Assembly (NCBI RefSeq): GCF_963676685.1
Contig: NC_092352.1
Location: forward strand, 80,786,001-80,850,000
Length of the DNA: 64,000 nt
Source of the DNA: Mytilus edulis
Taxonomy: Eukaryota
Direction: 5' to 3'
The notes under the pieces were generated by a model. It saw only the letters and a list, made by a program, of their open reading frames with translations. It was not told where the DNA came from and made no database searches. Shown one piece after another: positions 2,818 to 40,467 of the stretch. Position numbers and translations under genes: made by a program. The number at the start of each line of letters is the position of its first letter. Within the stretch, counting starts at the first letter, position 1.

Positions 2818-3153
2818 CATTCTAATGCAACAACGTTTGTAACGTTCATTTTGATTGGATAACGTCACTTTCTTACATGGCATCAATTGACAATTGATGC
2901 TATGGGACGTACGCGCAATCGCAGACGACATATGACAGATTTTAAATACATGTTTTAACGTTGTTTTCTGTCCGTTTCATTAGAATGGAGATAACAATAT
3001 TGTATTATAAGCTCCGACGGCATCAATTGGGGATTTGATGGTCGCAAATACCCATTTACTGTCTCCGCTTACGCGTCGCCAGTAAACTTAATTTGCGACC
3101 ATCAAATCCCCAATTGATGCCGTCGGAGCTTAAAATACAATACAGTTATCTCC
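2818..3153. mobile_element. Non-autonomous element with a ~167-bp terminal hairpin (2987-3153) and a short internal inverted repeat
   Basis: Near-perfect palindrome GGAGATAAC...GTTATCTCC; CATTCTAATG (2818) is inverted at CATTAGAATG (2978). Confidence 0.65.
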
Positions 3154-3269
3154 TAAATAGAACAGACAAAAGTGTAATTACATTGACCAAGAGAAGATCT
3201 AGATGACTTTGGAACTGTTTCATTTGGTTAAGCAAAATTCTGTCTATGTAAATTTCTATTGATTCATTA

Positions 3270-4126
3270 TTATACCCCCGCTTTAAAAAAGGGGGGGTAT
3301 ACTGTTTTACCTCTGTCTGCCGTCCGTCAGTCCGTCCATCAGTCCGTCCATCAGTCCGTCAGTCCGTCAGTCCGTCAGTCCGTCCGTCAGTCAGTCCATC
3401 CCATGAAACTTTCGTCTCATTTTTCTCAGGAACTACACATCCACCCTTTCTGTAATTTGGTATCAACATTTATATATGTTAGCTATACCGTGTGATGCGT
3501 TTTCAGATTCATCACTTGACAACTTCCTGTTTACCGAACACTTGTATGATTTTACACATGATAGCCAAGTTGAAAATTTTCGTCACATTTTTCTCAGGAA
3601 CTACACATCCACCCTTTCTGTAATTTGGTATCAACATTTATATATGTTAGCCATACCGTGTGATGCGTTTTCAGATTCATCACTTGACAACTTCCTGTTT
3701 ACCGAACACTTGTATGATTTTACACATGATAGCCAAGTTGAAAATTTTCGTCACATTTTTCTCAGCAACTACAATACAAGGATTTCTGAAATTTGGTTTC
3801 AGGATTTATATAAGTCAGCTATACCGTGTGATGCGTTTTCAGATTCATCACTCGACAACTTCCTGTTTACCGAACACTTGTATGATTTTACACATGATAG
3901 CCAAGTTGAAAATTTTCGTCACATTTTTCTCAGGAACTACAATACAAGGATTTCTGAAATTTGGTTTCAGGATTTATATAAGTCAGCTATACCGTGTGAT
4001 GCGTTTTCAGATTCATCACTTGACAACTTCCTGTTTACTGAACACTTGCATATTTTTACACTATTAATATTATCCACTTGCGGCGGGGGTATCATCAGTG
4101 AGCAGTAGCTCGCAGTTTCACTTGTT
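3270..4126 (+). mobile_element. Non-autonomous Helentron/DINE-1/pearl-like element carrying ~4 copies of a 168-bp repeat
   Basis: 5' subTIR ATACCCCCGC with adjacent inverted copy, (GTCC/CAGT)n microsatellite, 168-bp units (3413, 3581, 3749, 3917), 3' GCGGGGGTAT then hairpin GTGAGC-AGTA-GCTCGC, T-rich flanks. Confidence 0.85.
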
Positions 4127-4520: not shown

Positions 4521-5065
4521 AATACAATTTATCCTCAATCCACTGAAATTGGTACCCATAAGAATTGATGAATTCAATGTATAGTGTGTGGCAGTGATTC
4601 TGTTGGTGTCTTTTCCTGTCACCTGCATCACTTATTTAATCTGTTGCTCTTTTTATTTGATTTAAGTGGTTTTGAGATTTCCCATACTTAACATACTAGA
4701 CCATAAACTACTACATTTCTGCTTTAATATAACAGTGGGTTAATCTGCAGCTGTGTGAAACAATGTTGATGTCACCAAACTTGCACAGATTCTTATTATT
4801 ATTACAATTGTGACAGAATAGGTATCACAAAAAAGTAAAAAAAGTTGTATTTCAAATTTTAATATTATTATTCATAAGGAGCTTATACTGAAGTAGGAAT
4901 AATAAATCTGTAATTTTTCTTCATTGTTCAAAAATCAAAATTTTAATGCATGCAAAAATTTGTGATTTTATTATATTTCAGAATCATGTGTATTCGTTGT
5001 TTGTATTATTTAAGCTCTAACATTTTTGTGTGCCCATGTCTTCAATAATAAATTTCCATTTTCAG

Positions 5066-35347: not shown

Positions 35348-36166
35348 TCAATAATAGCCTCCATTATATCCATAGTTTGCACGTCCAAAACCGAAAGGAG
35401 ATTGATAAAAATAATCGGGATGGGACCAATAGTTTGGTGGAGATCCACTTTTGCCTCTTCCATTTTTGCGCTTTTTATTATCTCGTGGGTTATCTTTAGA
35501 ATTTTGATGCTTGATCTTTCGAATGTCACTTAACTTCTTGATAACCTCCTTTTCTGTCATCCTTTCTTTCTCTTTGGCTTTTTCTTCGAGTTCTTTCTTG
35601 TGAGTTCCCACAACAATTACCCTATAAAATAACATCATTATCATAAGGCAATTTTTAAGAGCGAAAAATATCACACCATAACTCAGTACCTCTTTCACAA
35701 ATATTGCACACAACCGTATAGTTAGGTATGGACCGTCTTGTAACATGATTGCCACAAACAGACTCCATATTTCCATCTCCACCAATTTTGCGCAACATCT
35801 TGCCGGTGCTCTTTTGGACGTTGTCCAGTCATCTTCGTCGTCCGGATCTTCCGCATCTGTTTGACCACCGCGTTGCTTCTTCGTGGAGGTTAGGACGAGC
35901 GTAAACTGTAGTAAGCTAATCGTCCAAACCGTTAAAATTGCATAACTAAATGTTTTATCGGCTCTAATTTCTTTTTCTTCGAAAATAATGAAAAGTTCCA
36001 TGACATCTGACCCGGAACCAATATATACAAATAATAGCTGTGACAGCTGATCACGAGTAAGTTTCCCTCGTGGCAACATCCATCGACCTAATATTAGGAT
36101 GAACAGAAATCCTTGTTCTAACACTGACGCCCATGTATCTGCATCGAGCTTTACAGGAATAGTTAA
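35348..36166 (-). CDS. TMEM26: TMEM26-like transmembrane protein, coding exon 3 (terminal)
   Basis: tttcag|LTIPVKLDADTW; family motifs GRWMLPRGKLTRDQLSQLL, QDGPYLTIRL, FFALKN; TGA at 35350-35348. Confidence 0.92.
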   Translation of the reverse strand, partial: LTIPVKLDADTWASVLEQGFLFILILGRWMLPRGKLTRDQLSQLLFVYIGSGSDVMELFIIFEEKEIRADKTFSYAILTVWTISLLQFTLVLTSTKKQRGGQTDAEDPDDEDDWTTSKRAPARCCAKLVEMEIWSLFVAIMLQDGPYLTIRLCAIFVKEVLSYGVIFFALKNCLMIMMLFYRVIVVGTHKKELEEKAKEKERMTEKEVIKKLSDIRKIKHQNSKDNPRDNKKRKNGRGKSGSPPNYWSHPDYFYQSPFGFGRANYGYNGGYY

Positions 36167-38077
36167 CTGAAATGAAAACAAACTCCATGAGTGTATACTG
36201 AGTTTATAAACACAATTAAAATAACTAATAAAACGTGTTGATCATCAATCGTAAAGTCAGATACTTCAATGTAACTTCTAAACGCAGTGTATAAAAATGC
36301 ACAACGTACAATTGAAATTCGTTCTAACTAATTATGAAAATGCACTTATGAAAATGTAACTTCTTTTAAAAGAAAATTAGGTGTAGAAATGTGCGATTTT
36401 GCTTCATCAAAGTGCTAAATTGAGATTAGTGAATATTTTGATTTCAAATTAAAGTCATATGAAATGAGTGACTGGTGAAAAATAATGCTTATCCAATTCT
36501 TGAACCAATGCATGTATATATCATAAACGTAGTCTTCTGTACACGATTTTATCATATTTTACCCATATATCGTAAATCTGTTATGAGGTGGAAAAAGGGC
36601 AGCTACTTAATTGTCGTGTTTTGAAGCCGTAGTTTACCGATTGTCACTTTATGGTAAATAATCAACAAAGAATCAACATTGATATTGAGCACGTGTTTAA
36701 CATACACAATCAGATAATTATTTATTTTAATGACAGACCCATGCGTATTTCGATCACCGGATTTTTACGAAGAGGATCACGCTAAGGTCACTTTGCTTAC
36801 ATAAGTTTTACATTGAATGAAAACTATCCATTCAGTTATAAAAAAAAATATGCATCATTTTTTTTATTTGAGGTTTCATATGACTAAAAAACTAAAAAAA
36901 AACTATGACAGAAAATTTAACATTTCTTTGGATAATATCAAGTTGATAATGTTTATATTACACTATTCATTGTATAAATGTAAAAAAAAAATGTTTTATA
37001 TAAACATGATTAGACTAATGAAGTCCAATTAATTTACTTCAAACATTTTGTGCTTTTGTTAGCTTATTCGCAATATTTGTTTTGGAAATGTCAATTTGAT
37101 GTTATATAATGCATTTGTTTAAGAAAACTGAAATAATAAAAGTATGGTGGCCGGTTAAGGCCATTTCGCGTTTTCGCGTTTTCGCGTTTTCGCCCATCAT
37201 ATTATATAGGGCGAAAACGCGAAAACGCGAAATCGCGAAGTCGAAAACGCGAAAACGCGAAGTCGAAAACGCGAAAACGCGAAAACGCGAAGTCGAAAAC
37301 GCGAAAACGCGAAATATTTTTTCTTTCCGATTTCGCGTTTTCGACTTCGCGTTTTCGCGTTTTCGACTTCGCGTTTTCGCGTTTTCGCGTTTTCGACTTC
37401 GCGATTTCGCGTTTTCGCCTTTTCGCGTTTTCGCCTTTTCGCGTTTTCGCGATTTCGCGTTTTCGCGTTTTCGCGTTTTCGCGTTTTCGCGTTTTCGCGT
37501 TTTCGCGATTTCGCGTTTTCGCGTTTTCGCGTTTTCGCGATTTCGCGTTTTCGCGTTTTCGCGTTTTCGCGATTTCGCGTTTTCGCCTTTTCGCGATTTC
37601 GTGTTTTATATACCAATACATATTCTTAGTAATTGACTTTATTTCATAATCTATTTTGTTCAATTCAATATTTTATCATAAATATTTGTTGTTTTTTAAG
37701 GTGTTTCGGTTAAGGTTTAACTACCAAGGCTTTTCCTCATCAGGTATCCCAAGCCTCTAACTAATAAAATAATCAGTTTCAAAGTAAAGTTCAAAGCATC
37801 CATACGCACAGAATTTAAAAATTCTGCATACCGGGATACAAGTGAACAAACACTTCAACAGAGTTTACATATACAATGTATAATTTTTGAAATAGATTTA
37901 AACAAAATACAAATCAATTCATCTCTCAAATAGAGTAGAATTAATAAAATACATTTCATCTCTCAAATAGAGTTGAAGTTCATATATATTCATTTCATCT
38001 CTCAATTAGAGTTGAAATAATTATACAAACAAACAAAATAGTTTTGTCACAAAACAAATTTATACAAATAAATTACT

Positions 38078-38706
38078 ATGAGTAATAGAAAAAGATCTCT
38101 CAGAAAAAGGGATAAGAAAAAACGATTAATAAAATACAAAAGTAAACTCCGTATACATAATAATAACAAAGGCCATCTTAAACGCACAAAACACTTTCAT
38201 GAAAATGTAAAAAAAAGCTTTAAACTATATAGAAGTGTTTTCACGTGAGAATCTCACAAACTATGAAATATTAGTTCTTGCAAAGGGATTAAAATTTATT
38301 CCCAGTCCTGATGTAAAATACATTAAACAAAATCTCTTACGAGATTTTGACGAACTAGGTAGAAAAATGCATAAAAGATACACTAAAAGAAATTGAAACT
38401 TTTAAAACAAAACTTCTCCAAAGGGGATACTCGGAAAAAGATATCAACCCCATTATAACAAATGCACTTCATAAGGAAAGAAAAGATTGTCTAAGGTACA
38501 AGCTTAAAAACAAAAGAGCAATGCCTCCATTTGTTTTAGCCACCAAATTTAATCCTTCCTTCAATGGACTAAATAAAGCAATTAAAAAACATTGGCACCT
38601 AATTGAACAAAATGATAGCACAAAAACCATGTTTCCAAAACCTCCGATCATAGCATATAAAAGACACAAAAACTTGAAGGATCTACTTACATCCTCCAAG
38701 TTATAG
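38078..38706 (+). pseudogene. Internally deleted Penelope-like (PLE) reverse transcriptase ORF with no GIY-YIG endonuclease
   Basis: ATG 38078, basic leader, frameshift in an A8 run, then IEVFSRENLTNYEILVLAKGLKFIPSP...LLRDFDELGRKM (PLE N-terminal motif) fused at ~38370 to FKTKLLQRGYSEKDI...FVLATKFNP...KHWHLIE...FPKPPIIAYKRHKNLKDLLTSSKL-TAG (PLE thumb/linker); RT palm missing. Confidence 0.85.
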
Positions 38707-38808
38707 GATAAACCAAGTTATAGGATAAATCACAACATAAAAGACAATGGTTATATCAAATCATAAACTGATTTAATTTAGAATACAATACATCAATACA
38801 AAGTTACC

Positions 38809-38956
38809 AGGTGTCGTATCCCGGTATGCAGAATTTTTAAATTCTATGCGTATGGATGCTTTGAACTTTACTTTGAAACTGATTATTTTATTAGTTAGAG
38901 GCTTGGGATACCTGATGAGGAAAAGCCTTGGTAGTTAAACCTTAACCGAAACACCT
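38809..38956 (+). ncRNA. Type III hammerhead ribozyme, predicted cleavage after GUC at 38815
   Basis: Stem III AGGTGT(38809-14)/ACACCT(38951-56); C17=38815; stem I GTATCCC(38816-22)/GGGATAC(38905-11); CTGATGA 38912-18; stem II closed by GG/CC (38919-47); GAAA 38948-51. Confidence 0.85.
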
Positions 38957-40467
38957 TAAAAAACAACAAATATTTATGATAAAATATTGAATTGAACAAA
39001 ATAGATTATGAAATAAAGTCAAATACTAAGAATATGTATTGGTATATAAAACACGAAATCGCGAAAAGGCGAAAACGCGAAATCGCGAAAACGCGAAAAC
39101 GCGAAAACGCGAAAACGCGAAAACGCGAAATCGCGAAAACGCGAAAACGCGAAAACGCGAAAACGCGAAATCGCGAAATCGCGAAAACGCGAAAACGCGA
39201 AAAGGCGAAAACGCGAAATCGCGAAAACGCGAAAAGGCGAAAACGCGAAAAGGCGAAAACGCGAAATCGCGAAGTCGAAAACGCGAAAACGCGAAAACGC
39301 GAAGTCGAAAACGCGAAAACGCGAAGTCGAAAACGCGAAATCGGAAAGAAAAAATATTTCGCGTTTTCGCGTTTTCGACTTCGCGTTTTCGCGTTTTCGA
39401 CTTCGCGTTTTCGCGTTTTCGCGTTTTCGACTTCGCGTTTTCGCGTTTTCGACTTCGCGATTTCGCGTTTTCGCGTTTTCGCCCTATATAATATGATGGG
39501 CGAAAACGCGAAAACGCGAAAACGCGAAATGGCCTTAACCGGCCACCATATAAAAGGTCATTGAATATTTAAATACTACGATCATATACTAATTTATAAG
39601 CAATCATAGCAGCAGAAAGTTTAAACCCTGTTCAAATAAGAGTGTATACATATATACTCGTGTGTCCCCTTTTCTGTTAACAGTGGATATTTTTTCAAGT
39701 GTTGGTGTTCTCTGTCTAATTTCCCGCTCAATTAACCCTTTCATAAAACCTATTAAAATTTTCAAAGACTTGTTTATTTTTTCAGTTTGTCAGTGCAACG
39801 TCATGTACATTTTACATATTTATTAAAAGCTCGCCATGTGTCCTCCAAACATAATTATTTCACAGTTCACCGACAAACTGTATCTACATACAATTTCATT
39901 ATACTTCAGTTACTTGTTCGATAATATTGACTGTTATCCGTTTATTATTTCATAACCCATTTTATATGAAAATTAAATTATTACACGTGTCTAAATCAAT
40001 CCAAGGTCTGGAGTAATCAAGCATTTCTATAATCATAATGTCTATGGGTTTTTTAAAGACACTTTACAGTTTCCGGATTGTCATAAGCGAGGTCATAAGT
40101 TGTAAGGAGGTCTTACTTCTGACACTCGTAGTTTGTTCAACGAATTGAACAAATATTTATCTATTCGTGATCATCATATTCTGTCATTATGAATTTCGTG
40201 ATATCTCGAATTTATTTAGTTCTTATCGCGATATTCAGAGTATCGATTTGAATTTGACTTTAAGCTGTCATCGCAGCACTAGATATCACGAATTGGACCA
40301 TCGCTAATGAGTTGAAGATTACGAATGTTGATACCGTTTTGTTACCGTAAACTTATCAAGAGATATTGAAAACCCACTGCTCATTTGTAATGTTCATCAT
40401 TGTATACAAACTATATCTACAATATAAATTTACGCCAACAATTTATTATTTACAAAAATAACTTTAC

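Follow-up and report, generated by a model that had tools for sequence, protein, structure and literature searches.

IS3EU and GingerRoot are DNA transposons with TA..TA termini and 6-bp target-site duplications, and GingerRoot elements often carry captured fragments (PMC10045372, PMC6839031). Penelope-like elements (PLEs) are retroelements in which partial tandems, head-to-head copies and tails are standard habits, and inverted 5' copies and hammerheads in the pseudo-long terminal repeat (pseudo-LTR) are typical (PMC8557442). Loss of the endonuclease inside endonuclease-bearing PLE clades is already known, for example in MjPLE01; such lineages are stated to need another source of 3'-OH ends, and how they secure it is a published open question (PMC8557442). 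We analysed a 64,000-nt stretch of Mytilus edulis DNA (NCBI RefSeq assembly GCF_963676685.1, contig NC_092352.1, positions 80,786,001 to 80,850,000 of the forward strand), hereafter the window, in which an insertion at 37143-39550 brought features of these two groups together.

We consider it likely that this unit is a fold-back DNA transposon, the shell, with a dead endonuclease-less PLE as cargo, moved by a transposase supplied in trans. Shell and cargo were separable, the cargo was derived and defective, and the chimeras had multiplied with fixed ends and 6-bp duplications. These results pointed to DNA transposition in trans, presumably by a DDE transposase. New here are the copy census, 17 target-site duplications, a paralogous empty site, the evidence that the cargo is derived, footprints at a predicted ribozyme cut site, and a second PLE family in the same shell. 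The family in the window element is called PLE1 and the second family PLE2.

The fold-back shell of the window element

The insertion was 2408 bp long and ended in TATGGTGGCCGG...CCGGCCACCATA (TATGG...CCATA). The hexamer TAAAAG stood directly outside both ends, at 37137-37142 on the left and at 39551-39556 on the right. This target-site duplication differed from the hexamers at all other copies. A left arm of 697 bp (37143-37839) and a right arm of 735 bp (38816-39550) enclosed a core of 976 bp. The outermost 171 nt of the arms were 100% complementary, and an inner stretch of 494 nt was 93% complementary. The length of the unit, the duplication, the TAT...ATA ends, the arms and the core had all been given in a preliminary description of this DNA, and each of these structural claims held.

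Each arm consisted of two parts. The outer 460-500 bp formed an array of the octamer CGCGAAAA in nested hairpins, and the inner 233 bp were unique sequence. The outer part was the shell arm proper, and the inner part was the PLE's own inverted pseudo-LTR. On the left, the shell arm (37143-37606, + strand) began with the terminus TATGGTGGCCGGTTAAGGCCATTTCGCG and comprised an outer hairpin (37143-37313), a loop at about 37314-37330 and an inner array of the 8-bp unit CGCGTTTT (37331-37606). On the right (39049-39550, + strand), an array of the 8-bp unit AAAACGCG with a nested hairpin led to the terminus ...CCTTAACCGGCCACCATA. The observed/expected ratio of CpG in the octamer arm array was 3.8.

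The 28-nt terminus was searched in the genome. It occurred 163 times in forward and 159 times in reverse orientation, compared with 0 matches for a reversed control, which corresponded to about 160 elements with these ends. Together with the private duplications, these counts placed the element structure far beyond chance. The TATGGTGGCCGG...CCGGCCACCATA termini were present in every copy examined. All 17 units examined had complete ends, with no truncation and no tails. A perfect private 6-bp duplication was found in 16 of the 17, the remaining one matching at 5 of 6 positions. Variant termini numbered only 20 in the genome, and none was paired.

Most family members carried no PLE, and the shortest were pure fold-backs. 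Their paired termini lay 288-374 bp apart, with the same nested hairpin and with 6-bp duplications of their own. Two such elements, L071 (duplication AGTAAA) and L072 (CAATAC), shared the left terminus and nested hairpin of the window element. In addition, one PLE1-bearing copy, L009, sat between two GAAATG hexamers, nested in another family member. The relative L073 had GAAATG once, and thus provided a paralogous empty site for L009.

The ends were therefore those of a DNA transposon, as the preliminary description had proposed, with the 6-bp duplications and TA..TA inverted repeats published for IS3EU/GingerRoot. The shell is probably a non-autonomous fold-back DNA transposon that moves at the DNA level by a transposase in trans, which is most likely of the IS3EU/GingerRoot type.

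Perfect termini also bounded three other elements, 2.0-2.8 kb long, at C1:39572240-39574720, C2:57718671-57720627 and C2:103765227-103768052. The junction pattern of PLE1 and the marker of PLE2, both described below, were absent from these elements.

Penelope-like cargo inside and outside the shell

The core of the window element held two remnants of one reading frame, preceded by the inverted PLE1 pseudo-LTR unit (37607-37839, - strand), a unit that was also present in PLE1 copies without a shell. The PLE1 5' leader followed (37840-38077, + strand), about 1960 bp shorter than in PLE1 copies outside the shell and containing three direct repeats of 37-38 bp (37906-38021). The N-terminal reverse transcriptase (RT) remnant (MSNRKRSLRK...LAKGLKFIPSP...) lay at 38078-38370 on the + strand, where the window copy had a private +1 frameshift in an A-run near 38213 (column 614 of the alignment of copies). 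The C-terminal remnant (38371-38706, + strand) comprised the thumb and linker (...FPKPPIIAYKRHKNLKDLLTSSKL, stop) and closed with ...PPIIAYKRHKNLKDLLTSSKL and the stop codon; no GIY-YIG domain came after it. At the junction 38370/38371 between the two remnants, about 1340 bp with the RT palm had been deleted. The core had earlier been described as a PLE RT relic, and this was borne out by the two remnants.

We then counted the chimeras. The 32-nt sequence at the junction of octamer array and inner arm had exactly 14 forward and 14 reverse matches in the genome, which meant 14 shell-plus-PLE1 copies. Twelve were short, like the window copy, and two were long (L061 on C2, 3520 bp; L070 on C4, 3307 bp). 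The core and both inner arms recurred on other chromosomes at 98-100% identity. Both ends could be located in 13 of the 14 copies, each of which had a private 6-bp duplication, imperfect (5/6) in one case; for the fourteenth, L007, the right end was not found. The preliminary description had raised the possibility of a sole chimera at this locus. Instead, the same ends and junctions recurred at independent loci with private 6-bp duplications, the shell-plus-PLE1 junctions being identical at all 14. Eleven short copies differed by a mean of 0.22% and had a single common deletion junction. The window copy thus belongs to a very recent burst. Differences of about 0.2% among the chimeras meant that the shell family was mobile very recently in Mytilus edulis.

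The long copies retained more of the RT gene. The core of L061 was 2316 bp long and encoded about 656 aa in two overlapping frames split by one frameshift, stopping at the same ...LTSSKL. RVT_1 (Pfam) was matched with E=2e-8. In L070, the gene was intact from the N-terminus through the RT palm (481 aa), with a deletion further on. A search for full-length copies with an intact YxDD RT had been proposed in the preliminary description: YRDDG was present in the long copies, the window copy being without the RT core, but an intact RT was encoded by none of the 14 PLE1 cargo copies.

PLE1 copies without octamer arms were also found (L062-L065 and L069, and the more divergent L066-L068). They reached at least 1960 bp further in the 5' direction, with two upstream reading frames. 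In L069, these encoded 94 and 135 aa (3044-3328 and 3395-3802), and the second ended in an RG-rich stretch, GRGRRNFRNNYY. Neither gave a Pfam match above threshold. The RG-rich tail suggests a nucleic-acid-binding ORF1. At the other end, the copies outside the shell went about 36 nt further 3', to ...GGATTGGTTCTGGACTCGTTATATCTCATTCA or ...CTCGTTATATCTCATTCA, and a short variable tail followed that repeated the start of the pseudo-LTR unit. The cargo was truncated at both ends, and PLE copies outside the shell therefore cannot have come from it. Those copies showed partial tandems, head-to-head copies, inverted 5'-truncated copies, short 3' tails and pseudo-LTRs. PLE1 copies were interstitial and lay on 14 chromosomes or contigs. 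No telomeric repeats were present at the PLE1 3' end (...CTCGTTATATCTCATTCA); the terminal site and the reverse-complement telomeric repeats at the 3' end that mark the telomere-associated Athena and Coprina were both absent from PLE1. Directly downstream of the PLE1 insertion L063, at 4753-4816, there was a fragment of a related pseudo-LTR unit, 84% identical, whose ribozyme core was the same but whose helix II segment differed. PLE copies appear to insert into one another repeatedly. L063 itself had no target duplication.

The RT lineage was compared with database proteins. The 481-aa RT piece was 96-99% identical to Mytilus galloprovincialis and M. edulis proteins; for the intact version of the N-terminal remnant, identity to Mytilus proteins was 99%. 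Among 163 homologues found, the nearest clade had 40-57% identity and consisted mostly of proteins of 612-666 aa without GIY-YIG. GIY-YIG occurred only in homologues at 35% identity or less, mostly of 680-840 aa, and PF01541 was found in no relative of at least 40% identity. In five of six clade members inspected, the protein ended within a few residues of the AYKRxKNL linker, and an endonuclease-bearing relative continued past this linker into a cysteine motif and GIY-YIG. The PLE1 reading frame stopped right after the linker without GIY-YIG, and about 105 nt later the ribozyme began. The frame end and the nearest clade thus agreed with the earlier claim of an RT lineage without endonuclease, and the PLE1 lineage is, on this comparison of proteins, genuinely endonuclease-less.

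The RT C-terminal half in the host element of L009 (L036) and in its deletion derivative L073 was a different one, ...KRMKDDGYILF...KKPTIAFKRNRNIGEIVKKHLK and then a stop. The PLE1 and PLE2 halves were 37% identical, and PLE2 stopped at the same linker. A 35-nt PLE2 marker had 10 exact matches, all tied to listed shell termini (nine between paired termini and one beside a single terminus); 10 one-mismatch matches lay away from all listed termini. PLE2 was thus carried by at least 10 elements whose termini were identical. A 943-bp PLE2 probe was 100% identical in the shell copies, at full length in six and partial in four deletion derivatives, and it matched about 20 other loci at 93-98% identity. 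Outside the shell, PLE1 and PLE2 were both present in many copies. Where a shell copy was full length, the initial 107 nt of the probe reappeared in inverted orientation about 150 bp downstream of the RT. The layout was arm, inverted pseudo-LTR, 5'-truncated body, pseudo-LTR and arm, as for PLE1; the PLE1 symmetry was read directly, and for PLE2 the left junction was read and the right one was deduced from match coordinates. The PLE2 cargo RT comprised only the C-terminal 240 aa in the one copy read.

Two readings were rejected. The start of the PLE2 segment had been taken as RT coding sequence, and the probe matches showed that it was the inverted pseudo-LTR. The inner satellite unit CACGAAATCG, considered as a link between both chimeras, was more simply a CpG-to-CpA variant of the normal unit. 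The L009/L036 locus (C5:67403423-67408051) was a PLE1-bearing element nested in a PLE2-bearing element of the same fold-back family, with the insertion point 7 nt downstream of the predicted PLE2 hammerhead cut.

The hammerhead-like motif at the arm boundary

A hammerhead-like motif of type III layout was read at 38810-38955 on the + strand, from its pairing and core. GGTGTC (38810-38815), just inside the core, formed the 5' strand of helix III, in which GGUGUC paired with ACACC (38951-38955) over 5 bp (GGUGU/ACACC). Helix I had 7 bp, GUAUCCC (38816-38822) with GGGAUAC (38905-38911), and a loop of about 82 nt. CUGAUGA and GAAA were in place, and the cut was predicted after GUC at 38815. The preliminary description had placed the 5' strand of a ribozyme in the core, which was supported in that the hammerhead-like motif straddled the boundary between core and arm. 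Rfam matches obtained at permissive thresholds in the window and in L073 were spurious, microRNA-like and located on octamer hairpins. Older PLE1 copies had mutated ribozyme cores, and these diverged copies were decayed, not compensated.

The PLE2 pseudo-LTR contained, by eye, a clean type I hammerhead, CGACCU-CUGAAGA-GAGUU...AACUC-GAAAC-AUUG...CAAUG-UA|AGGUCG. It lay at 565-650 of L073 (C4:70911293-70912246) and, in antisense, at 2298-2404 of L036. Helix I had 6 bp, helix II 5 bp with an inner hairpin and helix III 6 bp, with the cut after GUA. Rfam did not report it in L073 at E<=1.

The predicted PLE1 cut, after 38815, was the exact inner boundary of the right arm (38816). The sense pseudo-LTR unit ran from there to 39048 on the + strand and stopped at GTATTGGTATATA, about 36 nt before the 3' end of all PLE1 copies outside the shell. 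On the left, the inner end of the inverted unit (37839) was likewise the first base past the predicted cut. The same position recurred outside the shell. In the PLE1 insertion L059, an inverted unit abutted, at the first base after the predicted cut, a body truncated in the RT gene, and L063 had the same join with 6 nt of filler. Tandem units of 266-268 bp ran from the base after the predicted cut to the PLE1 3' end. Other inverted copies read through the cut site, which implied that cleavage was partial. The layout of inverted unit, truncated body and unit is a habit of the PLE.

Cleavage in vivo is favoured by three independent genomic junctions, and by the unit arrays, at the predicted cut; the ribozyme would thus be active. 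The inverted pseudo-LTR would be complementary DNA (cDNA) run off over the full length of the 3' fragment left by ribozyme cleavage, and the truncated cDNA to which it is joined would come from uncleaved RNA. This is consistent with the finding that purified PLE protein cleaves and extends both target strands in vitro; the same biochemical study of 2024 reported that RNA-seq read ends were absent at the hammerhead site (PMC11167929). The cDNA ends at the predicted cut, in three independent insertions and in the unit arrays, would constitute genomic evidence for ribozyme-cleaved PLE RNA as an RT template.

Head-to-tail arrays of the 266-268-bp unit, retrozyme-like in form, were observed at 1527-2294 of L065 (C7:78667026-78667793) and also in L018. 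Retrozymes have been proposed to derive from PLE pseudo-LTRs (bioRxiv 10.64898/2026.07.22.740005; PMC7229834), and the tandem PLE1 units fit this proposal.

Outside the insertion, about 1 kb away, the window had an open reading frame of 277 aa on the - strand (35348-36181). Its product had several hydrophobic stretches and a basic, glycine/tyrosine-rich C-terminus.

Origin of the chimera and comparison with known systems

The likely course of events can be outlined for a fold-back transposon with PLE cargo. PLE1 would have entered the centre of a fold-back once and left the usual PLE layout of inverted pseudo-LTR, 5'-truncated body and pseudo-LTR, in a 3.5-kb form that still had the RT gene. 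This form would have transposed. One derivative would then have lost about 1340 bp of RT and multiplied into the 12 near-identical copies, the window copy among them.

Several observations weighed against this account of two nested elements. The assignment of the shell to IS3EU/GingerRoot was based solely on the end dinucleotides and the duplication length. No transposase gene could be tied to the TATGGTGGCCGG ends when termini were listed and the genome was searched with integrase profiles. Co-location tests of integrase-type genes covered the listed termini out of the total of 322. An IS3EU-like transposase sharing the element's end, as pictured in the preliminary description, was not found near the listed termini, and with the IS481 profile no integrase-type match, short ones included, lay near any of them. 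A terminus pair 12 kb apart (L074) had one old, diverged end and was without transposase or RT similarity. An intact integrase-core gene of 346 aa was present in L075 at 2857-3897 (C10:25887856-25888893; rve E=5e-17, best against the IS481 transposase profile), with about 30 mostly decayed relatives of 45-97% identity scattered across the genome. It had no inverted ends within 3 kb, and nothing connected it to the TATGGTGGCCGG ends. For the ribozyme, helix II was weak (2 bp and an interrupted extension), the active fold lay 9 kcal/mol above the minimum free energy, and Rfam reported no hammerhead in the window at E<=1. An empty fold-back precursor was also missing, with 0 matches to the palindromic-centre pattern and 0 to CGATTTCGTGTTTTATA followed by anything but PLE. 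The two shell/PLE1 junctions were identical, each lying about 36 nt before the normal 3' end of PLE1. Such a pattern would not be expected from simple insertion and would require either symmetric priming at internal sites or homogenisation of the arms at a later time. Finally, two PLE families were found in a shell family that makes up, by a rough estimate, about 0.01% of the genome, which is unlikely by chance. There may be some targeting or functional link between the PLEs and the shell. Cross-homing of one PLE onto the other is unlikely because the protein identity of PLE1 and PLE2 is only 37%.

A specific form of such a link is that endonuclease-less bivalve PLEs take 3'-OH ends from breaks at fold-back centres, insert there preferentially with both ends priming, and are then spread by the transposase of the host transposon. 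We regard this as rather unlikely as a whole. Breaks at palindrome centres would nevertheless be the most economical idea of what PLEs exploit, and they would also explain the symmetric layout. Alternatively, the fold-back may have taken up existing PLE insertions at the DNA level (transduplication), as in Pack-MULE or GingerRoot elements or by recombination, without retrotransposition into the element. The captured fragments often held by GingerRoot, the abundance of PLEs among Mytilus repeats, where they rank among the most abundant (PMC8557442), and a shell/PLE1 junction located about 36 nt before the PLE1 3' end, where a breakpoint of recombination could fall, are in keeping with such uptake. 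However, both chimeras were bounded by the PLE's own outward-facing pseudo-LTRs with no non-PLE flank (the right side of PLE2 being deduced), and random uptake would rarely yield such symmetry twice. We consider DNA-level capture improbable.

The preliminary description had suggested that the unit may derive from an undescribed hybrid class, in which an RT and a ribozyme build a DNA bounded by terminal inverted repeats. In such a functional partnership, with PLEs and fold-backs depending on each other, the RT and the hammerhead would make the inner arms, or the PLE would target fold-back centres, and a DDE transposase would spread the PLE within chromosomes. PLE1 and PLE2, with RTs 37% identical, occurred in the same shell with the same layout; the left inner arm was an exact reverse copy of the predicted 3' cleavage product of the ribozyme; and an RT lineage consistently without endonuclease needs another source of 3'-OH ends. 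These points speak for a partnership, but the claim of a new class was not supported. The outer arms existed without PLE, and the PLE existed without arms and in longer form. The cargoes, without an intact RT in the 14 PLE1 copies and with only 240 aa in the PLE2 copy read, had still multiplied to near-identical copies. In addition, the cargo was truncated at both ends compared with PLE copies outside the shell, where both families were abundant, and most shell family members, the shortest being pure fold-backs, were PLE-free. The hybrid class is accordingly decidedly improbable. It is hardly conceivable that the whole unit is a retroelement whose arms are long inverted pseudo-LTRs and whose 6-bp duplications were made by a PLE endonuclease in trans. 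PLEs are known for inverted pseudo-LTRs and target duplications (PMC8557442), but PLE-free fold-backs shared the ends and the 6-bp duplications, PLE1 copies outside the shell had neither octamer arms nor these termini, all 17 units had complete, untailed ends, and the same ends enclosed PLE2, which is 37% identical. The simpler alternative in the preliminary description, a one-off PLE capture by a fold-back miniature inverted-repeat transposable element, came closest: capture was essentially right, whereas the chimera was not one-off, having multiplied, and two PLE families had been captured.

The nested reading carries a warning for annotation: a unit that combines an RT gene and a ribozyme with fixed duplications and clean inverted ends may be one ordinary element nested in another and not a new class. 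That a single fold-back family houses two unrelated endonuclease-less PLE families with the same layout also offers a testable lead on the source of 3'-OH ends inside chromosomes. Preferential insertion at fold-back centres, if true, would be a recurrent partnership of a retroelement and a DNA transposon. A partnership, if true, would also account for the persistence of interstitial endonuclease-less PLEs and demonstrate in vivo cleavage by PLE hammerheads.

The shell resembled Drosophila Foldback (FB) and other fold-back elements, which have long inverted arms of short tandem repeats with copy-variable arm length, a central segment that is variable or absent, and cargo between the arms. FB differs in its 9-bp duplication, compared with 6 bp here, and in its termini, and no link was shown between the shell and FB-associated transposases. 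With IS3EU/GingerRoot, the shell shared TA..TA termini, 6-bp duplications without a strict target motif, long inverted arms and the carriage of foreign fragments (PMC10045372, PMC6839031). In contrast to these transposons, no integrase-related transposase was found between the shell ends, the arms were nested hairpins of a CpG-rich octamer array, and the cargo was a retroelement and not a host gene fragment.

The cargo can be compared with two groups. Like animal non-LTR retrozymes, PLE1 formed tandem units from the predicted cut site to the PLE 3' end; unlike in retrozymes, the internal junctions of these arrays had no 5' strand of helix III, and the ribozyme was complete only in the unit beside the RT gene. 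With endonuclease-less PLEs within endonuclease-bearing clades, such as the Neptune-like MjPLE01, PLE1 shared the PLE N-terminal RT motifs and the thumb/linker. It also had the pseudo-LTRs, partial tandems, inverted 5' copies, short 3' tails and, as a hammerhead-like motif, the putative ribozyme at the pseudo-LTR that are seen in PLEs. Relatives run on into a zinc finger and GIY-YIG after AYKRxKNL, whereas the PLE1 RT gene stopped there. The hammerhead-like motif of PLE1 had a type III layout with a long loop 1, and animal PLEs usually have the minimal type I. PLE1 further differed from known PLEs in that it was interstitial, telomeric repeats not being seen, and in that it served here as a passive cargo.

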